DNA of 64,000 nt, from assembly GCA_048772705.1 (NCBI GenBank), contig JBLWGC010000213.1, positions 248,001 through 312,000 of the forward strand, read 5' to 3'. Made by a program: the position numbers and the translations under genes. The DNA is from Leidyana gryllorum EB-2025a (taxonomy: Eukaryota > Protista > Apicomplexa). Below the pieces are notes generated by a model. That model had not been told where the DNA came from and did not search any database. It saw nothing but the letters and a program-made list of their open reading frames with translations. Shown here one piece after another: positions 44,164 through 52,562 of the stretch; position 1 is the stretch's first letter; each line of letters begins with the position of its first letter.

Positions 44164-46335
44164 ATGAGCATAGAAGACGTCATGGCTCCTGTTAAGAGAA
44201 AGGCCTCGAACGAATTGGATGCAAGTTCTACTAAACTGACTAAAGTAGCCGATCTGCCCACTGAATACCGTGGCATCCCCAATGACGATATTGCCACTAA
44301 ATGTGTGAACACTATCCGTGTCACTGCCCCCTGTTTGCCTTTGGCAGCCAACTCTGGACATCCGGGTGCCCCTATGGGTTGCGCTGTGATGGCCCACGCT
44401 CTCTGGGGGGAGTTGATGAAATTTTCTCCGTCTAGCCCGCTGTGGTGGAACCGCGACCGTTTTGTGTTGTCAAATGGGCACGGATGTGCTTTGCAATACC
44501 TCATGCTCTACTTGACTGGCTACGACATGACACTTGATGACCTGAAGAAGTTCAGAAGTTGGGAGTCAAAGACCCCGGGTCATCCCGAAGTCCACATGAC
44601 CAAAGGAATCGAAGTGACCACCGGGCCTCTTGGACAGGGTATTGCTTCGGCAGTTGGTCTTGCGATTGGACAAGAGTCTTTGGCCGCTCATTTCAACCGA
44701 CCGGGTTATGAACTTTTTGATAACTACACATACTGCATCCTTGGAGATGGGTGTATGCAGGAGGGTGTGGCGAGCGAGGCTTGCAGTCTGGCGGGTCATC
44801 TTGGCCTGGGCAAGCTCATCTGCCTCTACGACGACAACAAAATCACCATCGACGGTGATGTCAAGATTAGCTTCACAGAGGACGTGAAGGGCCGCTTTGA
44901 AGCTTACGGATGGCACGTGCAATGGGTCGCGAACGGCAATGAGGATCTGACGGGTGTACTGGCAGCCGTGCGTAAGGCTCAGGAAGTCACCAACAAGCCC
45001 AGTCTGATCGGTGTCCGGACTACTATTGCTTACGGCAGCAACATCCAGGGTACTGCCAAGTCCCACGGCTCGCCTCTCAAGGAGGACGACATTAAGCAGT
45101 TGCGGGCCAAGTGCGGGTTCTCCGATGATATTTGGGATGTGCCCAAGGAGGCTTTGGAGTACTACAGAAGTGTCGGTGTTGAGGGCAACAAGAAGTGCGA
45201 GGCTTGGAACGCTGTGTTCGCCGAGTACAAAAAGCAGTTCCCCACTGAAGCGGCCGAACTCGAACGTCGGTTCAACGGAGATCTCCCAGAGAAGTGGATG
45301 GAGGCACTCCCCAAGTTCACTCCCGAGAGCAAAGCCGAGGCCACTCGTTCGCTATCGGAGAAGGTCTTGAACGCCCTCGCCGCGGTCTGCCCGGAGTTCA
45401 TTGGTGGAAGCGCTGACTTGACAGAGTCGAACAAGACGGACATTAAGAGTGAAACTGACTTCCAGTCAGACAACCAGATCGGTCGGTACCTGAGATTCGG
45501 CGTCCGCGAACACGGTATGGTCGCTATCTGCAACGGTCTGTTCGCCTACGGTGGCTTCCGTCCCTACTGCGCGACCTTCATGAACTTCTTCACGTATGCT
45601 TGGGGTGCGTGCCGTCTGTCTGCCCTTTCGAACTTCGGTATCGGCATGATCGCGACGCACGACTCAATTGACTTGGGTGAGGACGGACCCACCCATCAGC
45701 CCATTGAGACTGCTGCGCTGATGCGGGCCACTCCCAACATGCTGTTTGTGCGTCCTTGCGACGGCAATGAGACCAGTGGTGCGTACGCCACCTGGTTGAT
45801 CAACCGCACTCGCCCAACTGTGATGGCTTTGTCGCGATCAAACCTTCCTCATCTGGCTGGAACTTCGGTCGAGGGCACTCTGAAGGGTGCTTATGTGCTC
45901 GAAGACTTCGCTGAGGGAGATGGCATGAAAGTGTGCTTGGCGGGCAGCGGCTCCGAAACCCAACACGCTCTTGGTGCGGCCAAGATTCTGAGGGAGAAGG
46001 GTTACAATGTACGCGTGGTCTCAATGCCATGCTGGGAGCTCTTCGACGATCAAGGCGAGGAGGTAAGCGCGGGATGACAGAGTTGGTTCTTCTTATGAAA
46101 GTATCATGTGCAGTATAAACGATCAGTGATACCTCATAAGAGGGATGCTGTTTGTGCCTACATTGAGGCTTATTCAACTTTCGGATTCGCGAGGTACTTC
46201 GAGGAGGAAGCGTCCGTTGGAATGAGAAGATTCGGTTCATCAGCTCCTGCCAAAGAGTTGATGAAACAGTTCGGCTTCACCGCGGAGAACTTCGCCAAGA
46301 CCGTGGAGCAGTGGATCAAGGAGAACCGGTCCTAA
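44164..46335 (+). CDS. TKT: Transketolase, intron 46063-46113
   Basis: ANSGHPGAPMG, NRDRFVLSNGHG, TPGHPE, TTGPLGQG, GDGCMQEG, GGSADL, FGVREHGM, THDSIDLGEDGPTHQP. Confidence 0.98.
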
Positions 46336-46537: not shown

Positions 46538-48300
46538 CTATGCACGTGCACACATTCCAGGGGGAGACTGGGACACCACACAACCCGCTATTTGCTCAGC
46601 AGTGTTGCCCGACATACACCAGGCCCTCAAAGACCCACCAGGAGCATACATAGCACAACGACTCTTGCACTCAGAATTCCAATGGGCCGCTGTTCCCTTA
46701 ACCATTGACTCACAAGTGCCACCGCTTCCAGGTGGCACAGTAGTTGGAGCGGTTGTGGGAGCTGCTGTTGTGGGAGCTGCTGTTGTGGGAGCTGCGGTTG
46801 TGGGAGCTGCGGTTGTGGGGGCTGCGGTCGTGGCCCTGGTGGTCGAAGTGCTGCTAACTGTGGGAGAGGTGGTGGTCTGGGTACTGGAACCGCCGGTGCC
46901 CGGCTCCCAACACCAGTCGTGGAGGTGTGCAACACAGGAGCTCCAAGTGGTGAAGGCTTCACAAAGGCAGCGGCCGTGAGTCATGTACCAGTGGCACTGC
47001 TGCTGGCAGGCGCGAGCGCTGGGAAGATCTTGCGAGGTGATAGAAAGCATGCATTCCTCTTCAGACTGGGTGATGTGGTCACCATGTGAACCTCCGGGCG
47101 CGGCGGTAGTGGGGGCAGCGGTGGTGGGAGCGACAGTGGTGGGGGCACGGGTGGTGGTGGCCACAGTGGTAGGGGCCGTGGTAGAGGGAGCGACAGTGCT
47201 GATAGCGCCACCCGCGCAAGGTTGCATGAGCTTGTTGGCTTCAACAAAGAATTTCTCCTTGTTAGCATAGTCGTACTTCCAGAACATAAGTCCTCCGCGA
47301 TATCCGATTTCATTCCAAGCCTTGCAAGCCCACTCACGAACGACTCCCAAGTCCATCCACTGGCTGGCCTGTTCGACATGATTGACGGCGAAAGGTTTAG
47401 ACCAGACGAAACGGTGTTTCGGCAGGCCAGTATTAGCCCAAACTTGCGATACAGCGATCTCTGGGAACCAATCGTGCGACTTGATGAATGACTCCTGGTA
47501 GTTAGCGCCATTTCCAGCACCTTGATTGTAGTACTGAGTAAGGAAAATAAGATCGTGATTATCTTGCGCAAGCTTGTTGAAATCCCAACTGCCACCTGCC
47601 CAAAGACGACTCCACAGAGGAGATTCCGGGGCTGTTGTGAGAAAATCAATATAAGTCTTGCACCGTTTGGTGGAGGACATCATCCAGTTGTAGACAGCGC
47701 TAGTTGCTGCATAGTTCTGGTGAATGGATTCCATATTAAAGTCGACCGCAGTGAGACCCTGAGCCTTTGCCCATCCGCAGACGTCGTCAGCGTAAGCTGC
47801 GGAGCACCAAATTCAACACAGAAGGCTCAAAACACACCACTCACCTTCCGGGTTCTGAGTCAGCCAGGTACTACCAGCTGTGGCTCCTCCGGTGGAGACT
47901 CCGAGGTATCCCCCATTGCGCGATGCGGCGTAGATGGCAGCATCTTTCTGTGCTTGGGTCATATCAGTCCAACGTTTGACCGAATCAGCGACCTTCCCTG
48001 GCCATGCGGGGGCTCCGATAAGATAGAAAGCCATATGCACGACACTGATGCCGGCATCAAACATACGCACTAGATCTTCTGATTGCTGTGCGGGGGTGTA
48101 CGAGACACCTGCAGACTCCGAATGGTATACGTAGAGAGGCAACTTGTTTCCAAACAAGGGGCTGGTGGAATAACCGAATCATCAATGCGTCACAAAGTCA
48201 GTATAACTCACTGAACGTCACTGGACGTCGCCACATGATTGGTACGCTTCATGTTCACAGCCGAAGCTGTTCCAACGAGTGCGGCAACTGAGAGCTTCAT
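46538..48300 (-). CDS. GH18 chitinase-like protein A: signal peptide, DxNxE catalytic domain, TTAAP linkers, two Cys-rich modules
   Basis: MKLSVAALVGTASA signal; GVSTGGAT (SxGG), AVDFNME, LTTAPESP, TQYYNQG, YRGGLMFWKY; two introns at positions shared with the paralogs. Confidence 0.82.
46745..46832 (-). repeat. 15-bp tandem repeat encoding (TTAAP)n mucin-like linker; a second degenerate block lies at ~47095-47200
   Basis: gttgtgggagctgc[t/g] units directly visible. Confidence 0.9.
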
Positions 48301-48328
48301 GACAACTTCAAATCAGCCGACGAGGGGC

Positions 48329-48362
48329 GCACGTCCTCGAAGTAGAACGAATGTCTCATTTA
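48329..48362 (-). promoter_or_regulatory. Candidate promoter motifs upstream of chitinase A (TAAATGAGAC and GACGTGC)
   Basis: GACGTGC recurs at a similar distance upstream of paralogs B and C; TAAATGAGAC recurs upstream of B. Confidence 0.45.
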
Positions 48363-48555
48363 TACCACAAACATGTGTTCGGAATGCCGAACGTGCCGAA
48401 TTCGGGGGAAGCTGATGCGTACATCACTTTCCACAAAGACTCTGGGGGCCGATGTCCAGCACATCTCTCGATCGACCACCCGTGATCTAATTTTCTAGCA
48501 TAATGTCGGTTTACTATGAATTGCGGATAATACTTTTGTGTGGACGATAATGGTT

Positions 48556-49867
48556 CTACACCAACGCCGCCAAAGCAGCTCCAAGAACAAAACATTGAGC
48601 CGCAAACTGTGCTGGCAACCCGCTGGTGCTCTGATCGCCAGTTGCGGTTACGTCGCCAGTTGTGACTCCGTCGCCGCCTCCGACTCCAGCTGTGTGTGAA
48701 ACGCAGTATCCAATGAGCTTCGAATATTAAAAAGATACTTACCAGTGGAGGTGGGTGCAACGGTGATAATACTGCCTCCTGAGCACGGCTGGAGCAGACT
48801 GGTGGCTCGGGTGAAGAATGCCTCCTTGTTAGCATAGTCGTACTTCCAGAACATAAGTCCTCCGCGATAGCCAATTTCGTTCCATGCCTTGCAAGCCCAT
48901 TCGCGTACGTCATCCAAGTTCATCCACTGGTCGGCAGACTCCACATGATTGACAGCAAAAGGCTTAGACCACACGAAACGGTGTTTGGGCAAACCGGTGT
49001 TAGCCCAGATTTGTGAAACAGAAACTTGCGGGAACCAATCGTGGGACTGAATGAACGCTTCCTGATAATTCGCGCCGTTCCATCCACCCTGGTTGTAGTA
49101 TTGAGTCAAGAAAACCAGATCGGCGTTGTTCTGGGCGATCTTGATGAAATCGTTTTCTCCCCCAGCCCACACACGACTCCAAAGCGGGGCTTCCGGAGCG
49201 GTGGTCAAAAAGTTGATATAAGTCTTGCATTGTTTGGTGACAGCCATCATCCAGTCATATACTGCAGATGTTTTCGCGTAGCCCTGATGGATAGATTCCA
49301 TGTTAAAGTCCACTGCGGTCAATCCCTGAGCCTTGGCCCATCCACAAACGTCATTGGCGTATGCTGTCATGGGACATTAAGAGTTGCCAATCGTGCAATC
49401 TACTTACACTCTGGATTCTGCGCCAGCCAGCTGTCTCCGGCCGTGGCACCACCCGTAGACACCCCCAAGTAGCCACCATTGCGAGCAGCGGCTGAAATAG
49501 CGGCGTCCTTCTCAGCCTGAGTCATATCTGCCCAGCGCTTGACTGAATCCGCCACCTTGTCGGGCCATGCGGGAACGCCGATCAGGTAGAAGGCGAGATG
49601 AACCACACTGATGCCCGAGTCGAACATGCGAACCAGATCCTCAGATTGTTGGGCAGGGCTGTATGGGCTGCCAGAAGGGTCGAGGCTGCCGGATGGCTCG
49701 GAGTGATAAATATAAAGCGGCAGTTTGTTGCCGAACAGCGGACTGGGGAGACGACACTCGATGAGGCCTTTAGATACATTGTCGACTCACTGCTGGTCTT
49801 CGGACCGCACGACACCGGCGTCATCTGCCAAAGCGAGGGTGGTGAGAGCGGCGAACGAAAGCTTCAT
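48556..49867 (-). CDS. GH18 chitinase-like protein B with predicted GPI-anchor signal, 3 introns
   Basis: MKLSFAALTTLALA signal; AVDFNME; last exon after the GTAAGT..ACAG intron reads AGVGGGDGVTTGDVTATGDQSTSGLPAQFAAQCFVLGAALAALV-stop. Confidence 0.8.
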
Positions 49868-49899
49868 CTTTTGATCTACAATTCTATGCCTGCAGAAGT

Positions 49900-49932
49900 G
49901 CACGTCGTTATGCAAATCGAGCGTCTCATTTA
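49900..49932 (-). promoter_or_regulatory. Candidate promoter motifs upstream of chitinase B (TAAATGAGAC and GACGTGC)
   Basis: Same two words, in the same order, as upstream of A. Confidence 0.45.
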
Positions 49933-50056
49933 ATCAGCGGTGAACACGCGTGTGGATGATATTAACATTCGCAGGACACTGACGGATGGTTTTTTGCCAC
50001 TTTCTGATGATCACACTGTGTATGACAAGCATAATCGTGCATACATCTCAAGTTAT

Positions 50057-51394
50057 TCATAGCATTGAATATAACAGCGATACTGCACAAAGACCCTCAG
50101 ATATCAATTCCACTGCACCACTGCCTTCGCCCTCTGAGGTGCTGCCGTCTCCAACACTGGTGCTCGGGTTTCCACCACCACCGGTAGTGAACCAGCCGCC
50201 GCCCGAAGTTGTTTCCCAGCCGCCGCCCGAAGTTGTGTCCCAGCCGCCAGCGCCGTTAGTTGTGGCCTCCGTGCCGTCAGTAGCGGGGGGTACCCAGCCG
50301 GAGTCGCTGGTTGTAGTGGGGGCGGGAGTGACTATACTGCCTCCAGCGCAGGGCTGCATGAGTCTGTTGGCCTCGCTGAAGAAGTTCTCTTTATTGGCGT
50401 AGTCATACTTCCAGAACATAAGTCCGCCTCTGTAGCCGATTTCGTTCCAAGCCTTGCAAGCCCAGTCGCGGACGTCATTCAAGTTCATCCACTGATTGGA
50501 AGACTCCACATGATTGACAGCGAATGGCTTAGACCACACGAAACGGTGTTTGGGCAAACCGGTGTTGGCCCAGACTTGGGAAACAGCAACTTGCGGGAAC
50601 CAGTCGTGGGACTGAATGAAGGCTTCCTGATAATTCGCGCCGTTCCATCCACCCTGGTTGTAGTATTGAGTCAAGAAAATCAGATCGTCATTGTCCTGGG
50701 CGATCTTGATGAAATCCCAGTTTCCACCAGCCCACACACGACTCCACAGAGGCGCTTCGGGAGCAGTTGTGAGGAAGTTGATATAATTCTTGCACCGCTT
50801 TGTCGCCTTCATCATCCAGTCATAAACCCTATCATTCGCAGCATAGTTCTGGTGGATAGATTCCATATTAAAGTCCAGAGCGGTAAAACCTTGGGTCTTG
50901 GCGTAGCCACAAACATCGTCAGCATATGCTGTGTCACAGTGATTGATTGGCTGGGGACACAAAGTGAGGACTCACACTCTGCGTTCTGCTGAAGCCAAGT
51001 GTCTCCAGCGGTAGCGCCTCCTGTGGAAAGTCCCAAGTAGGCACCATTGCGGGCAGCAGCAGCGATAGCGGCGTCCTTCTCCGATTGATTCATGTCGGCC
51101 CAGCGCTTCACTGAATCCGCTACCTTGTCGGGCCATGCGGGAGCACCGATCAGGTAGAAGGCGAGGTGGACCACACTGATGCCCGAATCGAACATACGCA
51201 CCAGATCCTGCGACTGCTGAGCAGGCGTGTAGCTGACTCCCGCGGACTCGGAGTGATAGATATAAAGCGGAAGCTTGTTCCCAAATAGGGGGCTGATGAA
51301 GAGGAGATCGAGTGGTGTATTGCACTTTTTGACACTGTACTCACTGATCTCCCGCGACTGCGCTAATGAGTGCTGCGATAGAAAGAATCTTCAT
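50057..51394 (-). CDS. GH18 chitinase-like protein C with Gly/Thr/Trp linker and probable GPI signal, 2 introns
   Basis: MKILSIAALISAVAG signal; ALDFNME; YRGGLMFWKY; C-terminus SEGEGSGAVELISEGLCAVSLLYSML-stop. Confidence 0.8.
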
Positions 51395-51416
51395 GATGTT
51401 ACAACCGAATTGATGC

Positions 51417-51423
51417 GCACGTC
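51417..51423 (-). promoter_or_regulatory. GACGTGC motif upstream of chitinase C
   Basis: 22 nt upstream of the ATG; shared with A and B. Confidence 0.4.
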
Positions 51424-51479
51424 CCTCTCGAAACGCGATCCTCACATTACATGTAACACCAAGAGGCGTGTAGTAAAGT

Positions 51480-52539
51480 TCACATTGGGACTCCCGCTTC
51501 GGAAGTCTTGAGGATTGCAAAACCAGTGCTCCCATCACAATTCGAGAATAACAACTTCATATGGGTGAGCAAACCTTTCTCTCTATGGAGATACTTATAT
51601 AATGCTACCCCGGCTGAGTAACCAAATTCCTGTTCTGCCTCACAAACCCATTCGTGCACAACTCCCAAATCCGTGAATCCACCGGCAAATACCATCCTCG
51701 TGGCACTCGGCTTTGTCAAGGTCCACCGGTCGAGGCGGCCGTCCTTTGTCCGGTCAACGACTTGCTGGATAGCCATTCCCTCCCAGCTCCGTTGATCTGA
51801 GCGTCTGAACGCTTGCCAATACTCCAAAGGATTGGCTGCAATTAGCGAAGGTTACACACACACAAGGAGACACCATCGCGCACTCACCATCATATCCATT
51901 GAAATACCAAATATAAAAGTGCTCCACATCGGGCAAGTGTTGGGCAACATAGACGTACCCGCCACTGTCACCCGTCCAAGAGTCAGATACGTATGCATAC
52001 ATCAATGAATGAGTGATAATATCGACATGTTCAGCACATCTCTTCGAAGCTGTGATGATCCAATCGAGTTGTGTGCGGGGGGTACCAACGTCCATATTTC
52101 TCATCATCCAGTCAACTCCACCGTAGTCATGCGCTTTTGCGTACTTGCAGGCCTCATCAGCAGTGTCTGCATCGGAATGAAGGTCACAGATCACAATTTT
52201 AGTACCTTTTGGGTCCAAGGTCCACCAGTTCTGCGAGAAATCTCCTCCGATAGAGAGGAGTAGTTGGGTGTTTGAGACTTTTAACTTGTCAATAACATTT
52301 GCCTTCTTCTCGTCCTGCAGCCTCTCCCAAGCCAAAGCACTATTGGCAACGTGATCAGGCCACGTGTCGTTGTTCAGTATGTAAGACATCATGATGACTC
52401 GACTAGCGCCTGTGAAGGCGACGGACATGAGATCATCGGCCAAGGCGTCGCCACTTCGGGTCCAGTCATCAAAGTAGATGCCCAGAGACGTGGCGCTGAC
52501 TGTCCATACTAAGGTGAAGGGTAGCAGGAAGGCTCCCAT
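51480..52539 (-). CDS. Divergent GH18-fold protein D lacking the catalytic Glu (chitinase-like lectin/pseudoenzyme)
   Basis: Signal peptide; LLLSIGG; YGGVDWMMR in place of DGxDxDxE; ITHS, FYIWYFN, WTLTKP, DLGVVHEWVCEA..GYSAGVALYKY align with A-C. Confidence 0.72.
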
Positions 52540-52562
52540 TGTCGTGCATGCGTGCGGTTCAT

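Follow-up and report, generated by a model that had tools for sequence, protein, structure and literature searches.

Tandem GH18 chitinase-like genes with altered active sites and contrasting tails in the gregarine Leidyana gryllorum

What might a gregarine do with four chitinase-like genes in a row, and whose chitin would their products work on? The interval 46538-52539 of a 64,000-nucleotide stretch of the Leidyana gryllorum EB-2025a genome (GCA_048772705.1, contig JBLWGC010000213.1, positions 248,001 to 312,000 of the forward strand; hereafter the window) is fully occupied by four co-oriented minus-strand genes, A, B, C and D. A preliminary description, made from the letters alone, had taken them for an array of glycoside hydrolase family 18 (GH18) paralogs with signal peptides and a division of labour. 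Our analysis favours, with a probability of roughly 0.55, a lineage-specific tandem expansion in which A, B and C are attenuated chitinases with a DxNxE active site, placed by their C-terminal tails, and D is non-catalytic, the set acting on host chitin. The gene models, family membership, motifs, selection, module sharing and motif placement on which this explanation builds were shown from the sequence.

Gene models were obtained by enumerating GT-AG introns, with splicing predicted from sequence; database tools were run on single exons, and the joined models were compared in scripts with retrieved sequences. All four models are open from ATG to stop, and each begins with a hydrophobic N-terminus that was read as a signal peptide, in agreement with the co-oriented paralogs with signal peptides described earlier:

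46538..48300, minus strand: gene A, 554 aa; introns 48211-48162 and 47844-47797; signal peptide, compact GH18 domain (DxNxE), Thr/Pro stalk, degenerate Cys module, TTAAP stalk, terminal six-cysteine module
48556..49867, minus strand: gene B, 388 aa; introns 49790-49743, 49407-49364 and 48742-48690; signal peptide, GH18 domain (DxNxE), short Gly/Thr stalk, tail resembling a glycosylphosphatidylinositol (GPI) signal
50057..51394, minus strand: gene C, 412 aa; introns 51344-51293 and 50975-50929; signal peptide, GH18 domain (DxNxE), Gly/Thr stalk with three Trp-containing repeats, weaker GPI-like tail
51480..52539, minus strand: gene D, 322 aa (335 aa with a 39-nt intron retained); intron 51887-51836, probable intron 52205-52167; signal peptide and divergent GH18 barrel, with no catalytic Asp/Glu, stalk or tail
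52167..52205, minus strand: probable GT-AG intron of D, 39 nt and in frame, matching intron 2 of A-C in position and phase

Two introns are common to A, B and C in position and phase, as had been noted before, one in phase 2 after the signal region and one in phase 1 between strands 3 and 4; the third intron of B is located in its stalk. Excising the 39-nt stretch from D increased its profile scores by 13-15 bits and brought the distance from SxGG to the catalytic strand back to its modal value. The alternative of a 13-residue insertion found in D alone was rejected, as the stretch is better explained as an intron. D probably shares intron 2 with A-C, is 322 aa long and comes from the same tandem ancestor.

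Searched exon by exon, which handicaps such a test, A-D gave no match to Pfam GH18 (PF00704) at E<=1 for any exon, and Pfam and NCBIfam run on single exons of the four genes identified no GH18 match. A word-indexed homologue search with the exon-3 domain of A returned no relatives. The connection to the family was provided by paralog E, a fifth, intronless member with the catalytic strand DGVDFDLE:

about 1204445-1205761 of contig C230 (piece L004:1093-2409), minus strand: paralog E, head to head with a secreted subtilisin (Peptidase_S8)

E itself does not reach the curated PF00704 cut-off (24-26 bits against 29.6), and solved compact chitinases match it by sequence. Its predicted fold is a (beta/alpha)8 barrel (predicted local distance difference test, pLDDT, 91) with 6K7Z as the top Foldseek match (E 4e-16, template modelling score 0.70), and the best structural matches are a Pseudoalteromonas GH18 protein and Serratia ChiC. 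A profile built from 148 relatives of E matched A-C with 173-185 bits (E 1e-46 to 1e-49) and D with 123 bits (E 7e-31), or up to 137 bits with the intron removed. In addition, a profile of exon 3 of A-C together with the JGI transcript proteins P0014 and P0158 matched Serratia ChiC-type structures at E 1e-4. The four genes are therefore assigned to GH18 through E and the family profile; the Pfam check proposed in the preliminary description gave no match by exon, and the profile of relatives of E matched all of A-D. The barrel itself would carry over from E to A-D by alignment, and a single-sequence fold of B exon 3, made with no alignment, was unusable (pLDDT 40). The earlier assignment to a compact GH18 barrel is upheld through the fold of E and the family profile, with all of its listed motifs present and the TIM barrel seen in the predicted structure of E.

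Exactly five family members, A-D and E, were detected in the genome. The closest named relatives of E are proteins of Blabericola, Gregarina sp., Protomagalhaensia and Lankesteria, which makes the organism almost certainly a eugregarine; the data sets of the first three are trophozoite transcriptomes of cockroach gregarines (PMC8051059). A tree of 35 rows placed A-D and E together with the gregarine proteins on one side of a 100/98 branch, with euglenid, amoebozoan and other relatives opposite, and A-D were grouped with P0014/P0158 (93/83); the tree is unrooted, D forms a long branch, and the first 75 matches, or a 26-protein subset, were included. The likeness to ciliate or basidiomycete GH18 that had been suggested earlier was not borne out, as the nearest named relatives are gregarine, followed by euglenid and amoebozoan ones, and the named top matches include neither ciliates nor basidiomycetes. 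No orthologs of A-C were found in the gregarine trophozoite sets or in metagenomes, the metagenome scan giving one distant relative only. Two further proteins in the gregarine part of the tree, P0011 and P0154, have degenerate catalytic motifs.

The catalytic strands of the four genes depart from the family pattern in two different ways:

47729..47752, minus strand: catalytic strand of A, TAVDFNME; without the first Asp, with Asn for the middle Asp and with the Glu retained
49296..49319, minus strand: catalytic strand of B, TAVDFNME
50861..50884, minus strand: catalytic strand of C, TALDFNME
52099..52122, minus strand: dead catalytic strand of D, GGVDWMMR

A-C thus carry T-A-[VL]-D-F-N-M-E instead of the canonical D-G-x-D-x-D-x-E, that is, TxxDxNxE and not DxxDxDxE. 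Among the 148 relatives, the first Asp is present in 142/148, the middle Asp in 139/148 (Asn in three) and the Glu in 142/148. The catalytic Glu on strand 4, SxGG, QYYNQG, the strand-6 Tyr and the terminal strand-8 Trp are all retained in A-C. The preliminary description had implied three ordinary enzymes and one dead copy, which overlooks the Asp-to-Asn change. By analogy with characterized enzymes, an attenuated hydrolase would be the default reading of this active site: the natural DxNxE chitinase MpChit38 hydrolyses colloidal chitin with a kcat/Km of about half that of its DxDxE paralog (PMC10799394), and a Leishmania mexicana chitinase with DxNxE was reported to be active (PMC13231604).

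The catalytic domains of A-C are 82-85% identical, and synonymous sites are saturated between A and B/C, with a nonsynonymous divergence (dN) of about 0.10-0.12. Calling the domains near-identical was therefore too strong. A recent duplication was also considered and rejected, synonymous sites being saturated. For the B-C pair, the ratio of nonsynonymous to synonymous divergence (dN/dS) is 0.11, and a gene-conversion tract between B and C extends over roughly codons 180-270. Purifying selection together with the saturated synonymous sites indicates that the odd DxNxE motif is old and selected.

The Asn is fixed in all three paralogs and is coded by both AAT and AAC, which would also suit a reading in which A-C are mainly transglycosylases or slow tight binders on host chitin, active in adhesion or remodelling, and bulk hydrolysis is left to E and to the class V GH18 and GH19 enzymes. 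Canonical hydrolases are already present in the genome, and engineered middle-Asp-to-Asn mutants of Serratia ChiA and ChiB displayed lower Km and more transglycosylation (PMC5505975; PMC10536575). However, MpChit38 is an ordinary endo-hydrolase despite its natural DxNxE motif, and the efficient mutants are deep-cleft bacterial enzymes, whereas the barrel here is compact with its best matches among ChiC/class III-like proteins. We regard this possibility as rather unlikely, even though it survives best among the alternatives.

D is divergent and lacks the catalytic Glu, as the preliminary description had stated. It has Arg in place of the Glu, Phe at the strand-6 Tyr and Tyr at the strand-8 Trp, and SxGG is retained. 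At 26-28% identity to A-C, it has kept all four domain cysteines, an open frame and the signal peptide. By its residues, D is a GH18 chitinase-like pseudoenzyme, with a predicted GH18 fold, the catalytic Glu lost and the reading frame intact; dead or altered copies have arisen more than once in the gregarine GH18 family.

The contrasting C-termini described earlier, TTAAP linkers and Cys modules in A against a Gly/Thr stalk and a hydrophobic tail in B and C, were indeed found. GPI features were judged by simple rules, which ask for a signal at the N-terminus, an omega site of small residues, a spacer and a hydrophobic end with no cytosolic tail behind it:

48559..48630, minus strand: GPI-like signal of B (rule-based); S-T-S omega candidate 24 residues from the end
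50060..50125, minus strand: GPI-like signal of C (rule-based); G-S-G / S-G-A omega candidates 20-22 residues from the end

B ends in 25 uncharged residues with a mean hydropathy of 2.7 over the last 11, and C in only 12 uncharged residues after an acidic spacer with a mean hydropathy of 2.1, so that the fit to the rules is good for B and moderate for C, the weaker case. A has no terminal hydrophobic run and is read as a secreted protein. The stalk of C contains three Gly/Thr repeats (window 50189-50245), each with a Trp, which is odd for a plain spacer; these repeats might possibly make weak glycan contact.

Predicted surface anchors also occur in two further chitinase arrays of the genome:

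contig C143:44000-52700 (pieces L013/L014), minus strand: four class V GH18 genes with canonical DxDxE and GPI-like tails (two checked)
contig C230:1675100-1681100 (piece L051): four tandem GH19 genes

The two class V tails that were checked resemble those of B and C, and three of the four GH19 genes appear to end in a membrane helix followed by a short acidic tail. Surface anchoring of chitinases is therefore predicted to be a genome-wide theme and not confined to this locus. A further partial class V GH18 copy is present at the start of contig C143.

The tail of A is of a different kind. Its last 60 residues align with the C-termini of E, of three gregarine E orthologs and of P0014, with six invariant cysteines. 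Scored against a profile built without A, the terminal module reached 42.9 bits (best shuffle 8.9), and a search of the genome with the six-cysteine profile identified three further genes (E 2.5e-15 to 7e-6). The inner Cys/His module of A reached 10.9 bits, which is in the shuffle range (1/300 shuffles higher). One of the three further genes encodes a lytic polysaccharide monooxygenase (LPMO):

46541..46720, minus strand: terminal six-cysteine module of A, candidate new carbohydrate-binding module (CBM)
46901..47065, minus strand: inner Cys/His module of A, with six aligned cysteines but no conserved Trp; at most a weak member
piece L044:574-1677 (contig C211): AA15-like LPMO with the six-cysteine module, secreted, with N-terminal His
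piece L041:274-1665 (C104) and piece L043:706-1674 (C82): two secreted six-cysteine proteins with stalks

The LPMO passes the LPMO_10 cut-off (PF03067, 35.9 bits), and its closest structure is AA15 5MSZ. Judging by their motifs and one sub-threshold Pfam match, both stalked proteins appear expansin/cerato-platanin-like. Every carrier has the module at its C-terminal end, behind a low-complexity linker, an architecture that would represent the domain grammar of a carbohydrate-binding module. The module matched no described CBM (CBM14, CBM18, CBM1 and others), and Pfam, PDB-sequence, ESM Atlas and homologue searches were blank, which does not prove its novelty. As it is terminal on several unrelated polysaccharide-active proteins and matched none of the families searched, it is a candidate chitin-binding module.

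Whether the four genes are switched on together, as the preliminary description had proposed, was approached through their upstream DNA:

48329..48335, minus strand: GACGTGC, 35 nt before the ATG of A
49900..49906, minus strand: GACGTGC, 39 nt before the ATG of B
51417..51423, minus strand: GACGTGC, 29 nt before the ATG of C, in the 85-nt gap after the stop of D

These heptamers are located in short conserved blocks amid otherwise diverged DNA, and the blocks by themselves could be explained through shared ancestry. The pattern RACGTGC also precedes each of the four class V GH18 starts, by 13 nt, and three of the four tandem GH19 starts, by 25-35 nt, placing it 13-39 nt ahead of start codons in three unrelated chitinase arrays. 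It is present in 0.4-0.5% of random windows, and in a rough set of 68 ATG-initiated open reading frames (ORFs), many of them internal exons, the only three carriers are GH19 genes. The chance of both further arrays carrying it is about 2e-4 to 4e-4, or 0.005-0.01 once corrected for the loci that were looked at. No copy is present within 50 nt upstream of D, E, the LPMO, the pair of expansin-like genes or two GH19 genes, and one unrelated secreted protein does have it upstream. The genome-wide pattern count was 36, compared to 14 for the control, and most of the extra matches are not gene starts. RACGTGC is thus a candidate element for the anchored chitinase arrays, the background set being small. 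A chitin regulon spanning all chitin-active genes was rejected, given the genes without the motif. As D is among these, the array as a whole is probably not regulated as one unit; the proposed co-regulation gained real support for A-C, from the conserved blocks and the element shared with two unrelated chitinase arrays, and D is probably outside it.

At least four of the genome-wide motif matches (C97, C114, C147, C176; pieces L059, L062, L072, L076), and by sequence a fifth on C218, belong to a repeated element with a downstream tRNA-like sequence. Two others, C33:50205-50222 and C230:345558-345575 (minus strand), have a motif-to-ATG spacing almost identical to that of the class V chitinase starts, and the genes downstream may belong to the same regulon. 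Just before the ATG of D, at window 52545-52551, lies GCATGCA / TGCATGC, which resembles a known apicomplexan AP2 binding site. The array is flanked by a plus-strand transketolase gene ending at 46335 and by an upstream ORF with its stop 23 nt before D.

The question of whose chitin is cut was addressed at the level of the genome, which has class V GH18, GH19 and LPMO genes in addition to the array:

contig C42 (piece L052): separate secreted GH19, 691 aa

A second LPMO-like protein, with His after the signal peptide and no Pfam match, is encoded on piece L053:4240-5208 (C213, beyond the window). For chitin synthase, an exon-by-exon search of the genome gave no PF03142 match at E<=0.1; PF01644 was likewise blank but uninformative, as its control gave no match either. 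With several chitinase families and an LPMO present and no chitin synthase found, the more economical assumption is that the substrate is host or ingested chitin. Trophozoites of other gregarines express the E orthologs, whose sequences are transcriptome-derived. Of the two kinds of target named in the preliminary description, the host's chitin is favoured and the parasite's own cyst wall is weakened.

The substrate could also be another N-acetylglucosamine glycan, such as host N-glycans, mucins or bacterial peptidoglycan, with A-C acting as endoglycosidases or lysozymes. GH18 endo-N-acetylglucosaminidases and hevamine-type lysozymes are among the fold matches, faint TIM-barrel_EndoS matches occur in relatives, and GH85 endo-N-acetylglucosaminidases use an N-x-E pair. 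However, chitinases are the best matches by both sequence and fold, the Cys module is common to A and the AA15-like LPMO, and the upstream motif is common to A-C and the GH19 and class V chitinases. This alternative appears improbable.

We consider it just as doubtful that A-C remodel the wall of the parasite's own gametocyst or oocyst. GPI-anchored chitinases of fungi do remodel their own cell wall, and the absence of A-C from the trophozoite transcriptomes of other gregarines is what would be seen for a cyst-stage gene. In contrast, the PF03142 search was negative, with PF01644 contributing nothing either way, and no description of chitin in gregarine walls was found in the literature consulted. 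Finally, it is quite improbable that there is no division of labour at all, A-C being dosage duplicates with drifting tails and D a relic, as might be suspected from the gene conversion between the domains and from the long branch of D and its lack of the upstream element, since the tails are coherent functional types and the open frame, signal peptide, SxGG and four cysteines of D at 26-28% identity point to long retention.

In the preferred explanation of attenuated, tail-placed chitinases on host chitin, the ancestor would have resembled P0014 or paralog E, a secreted DxDxE protein with a stalk and a six-cysteine module. A-C would have a catalytic domain in common, whose copies purifying selection and gene conversion have kept similar. 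With the acid/base Glu and the Tyr/Asn/Trp binding residues retained and Asn in place of the middle Asp, this domain would most likely cut chitin by the usual substrate-assisted mechanism but more slowly, and probably as an endo-acting enzyme. Location would be set by the tail: A may leave the cell and stay bound to chitin through its Cys module(s), B and C would be tethered by GPI, with stalks of about 30 and 75 residues, and D would be soluble and non-catalytic and may still bind. Such a division of labour among A-D is an inference from their sequences. A-C would probably be switched on via RACGTGC along with the anchored arrays of class V GH18 and GH19 genes, at a stage when the parasite grips or crosses host chitin, be it the peritrophic matrix, the gut lining or ingested chitin. 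Activity, GPI anchoring, binding by the module, co-expression and the host substrate are the deduced parts of this explanation. Some points weigh against it. A-C have also lost the first Asp and differ at other near-invariant columns, and the known natural DxNxE enzymes are not clear precedents for these changes; chitin synthase was searched for exon by exon, in an assembly that may be incomplete; and, with no A-C orthologs in trophozoite sets or metagenomes, the available sequences would not fix the expression stage.

Each ingredient has precedent, namely tandem GH18 arrays, GPI-type chitinases, dead GH18 copies and natural DxNxE enzymes. Gregarine-encoded chitinases, however, were not found described in the literature consulted, and A-D are missed by Pfam at exon level. 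The array belongs to a wider set of chitin-related genes, apparently undescribed so far, whose most likely target is host chitin; if so, it gives a testable account of how gregarines handle host gut chitin. A further-reaching proposal, a dedicated gregarine chitin programme new to Apicomplexa, would combine three unrelated surface-anchored chitinase arrays under RACGTGC, a soluble set aimed by the six-cysteine module (GH18, LPMO, expansin-like) and A-C as natural transglycosylases or grippers; we consider this speculative and put it forward with little confidence. The locus supplies a candidate new carbohydrate-binding module family and a candidate stage-specific promoter element, and A-C and E form a natural DxNxE versus DxDxE paralog pair for enzymology.

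Compared with known systems, the array is closest to the compact GH18 proteins of other gregarines (Blabericola migrator, Gregarina sp. Poly, Protomagalhaensia wolfi, Lankesteria abbotti; EukProt) and E, which belong to the same subfamily. The Blabericola, Gregarina and Protomagalhaensia proteins and E carry the stalk and the six-cysteine module, but these relatives have a canonical DxDxE, 25-29% identity to A-C and no GPI-like tail. P0014/P0158 share the four domain cysteines of A-D, the stalk and the six-cysteine module, but differ from A-C by a canonical DxDxE and about 33% identity over the C-terminal half. The compact structures 6K7Z, Serratia ChiC (4AXN), hevamine and ScCTS1 resemble the family in the insertion-free barrel, SxGG, AP-x-x-P, Q-Y-N and the terminal Trp; their structural-alignment identity to E is <20%, and A-C lack two of the three core aspartates. 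The same Asp-to-Asn change as in A-C, with reported activity, is found in Metschnikowia MpChit38 and the Leishmania chitinases (PMC10799394, PMC13231604), and as these belong to different lineages, the change is convergent with that in A-C. The Leishmania motif DGIDFNWE retains the first Asp that A-C have lost, and the Ala that A-C have after SxGG is in MpChit38 an Asp, which might compensate. The Leishmania chitinase was likewise proposed to attack host peritrophic chitin in the insect gut, as is Plasmodium CHT1. Both are single secreted enzymes, unlike A-C, which are part of an array with anchored and dead members, and neither was among the named matches. D resembles the chitinase-like proteins (concanavalin B, XAIP/XIP-type, YKL/IDGF) in having a GH18 barrel without the catalytic Glu, but arose independently of them, inside the gregarine clade.

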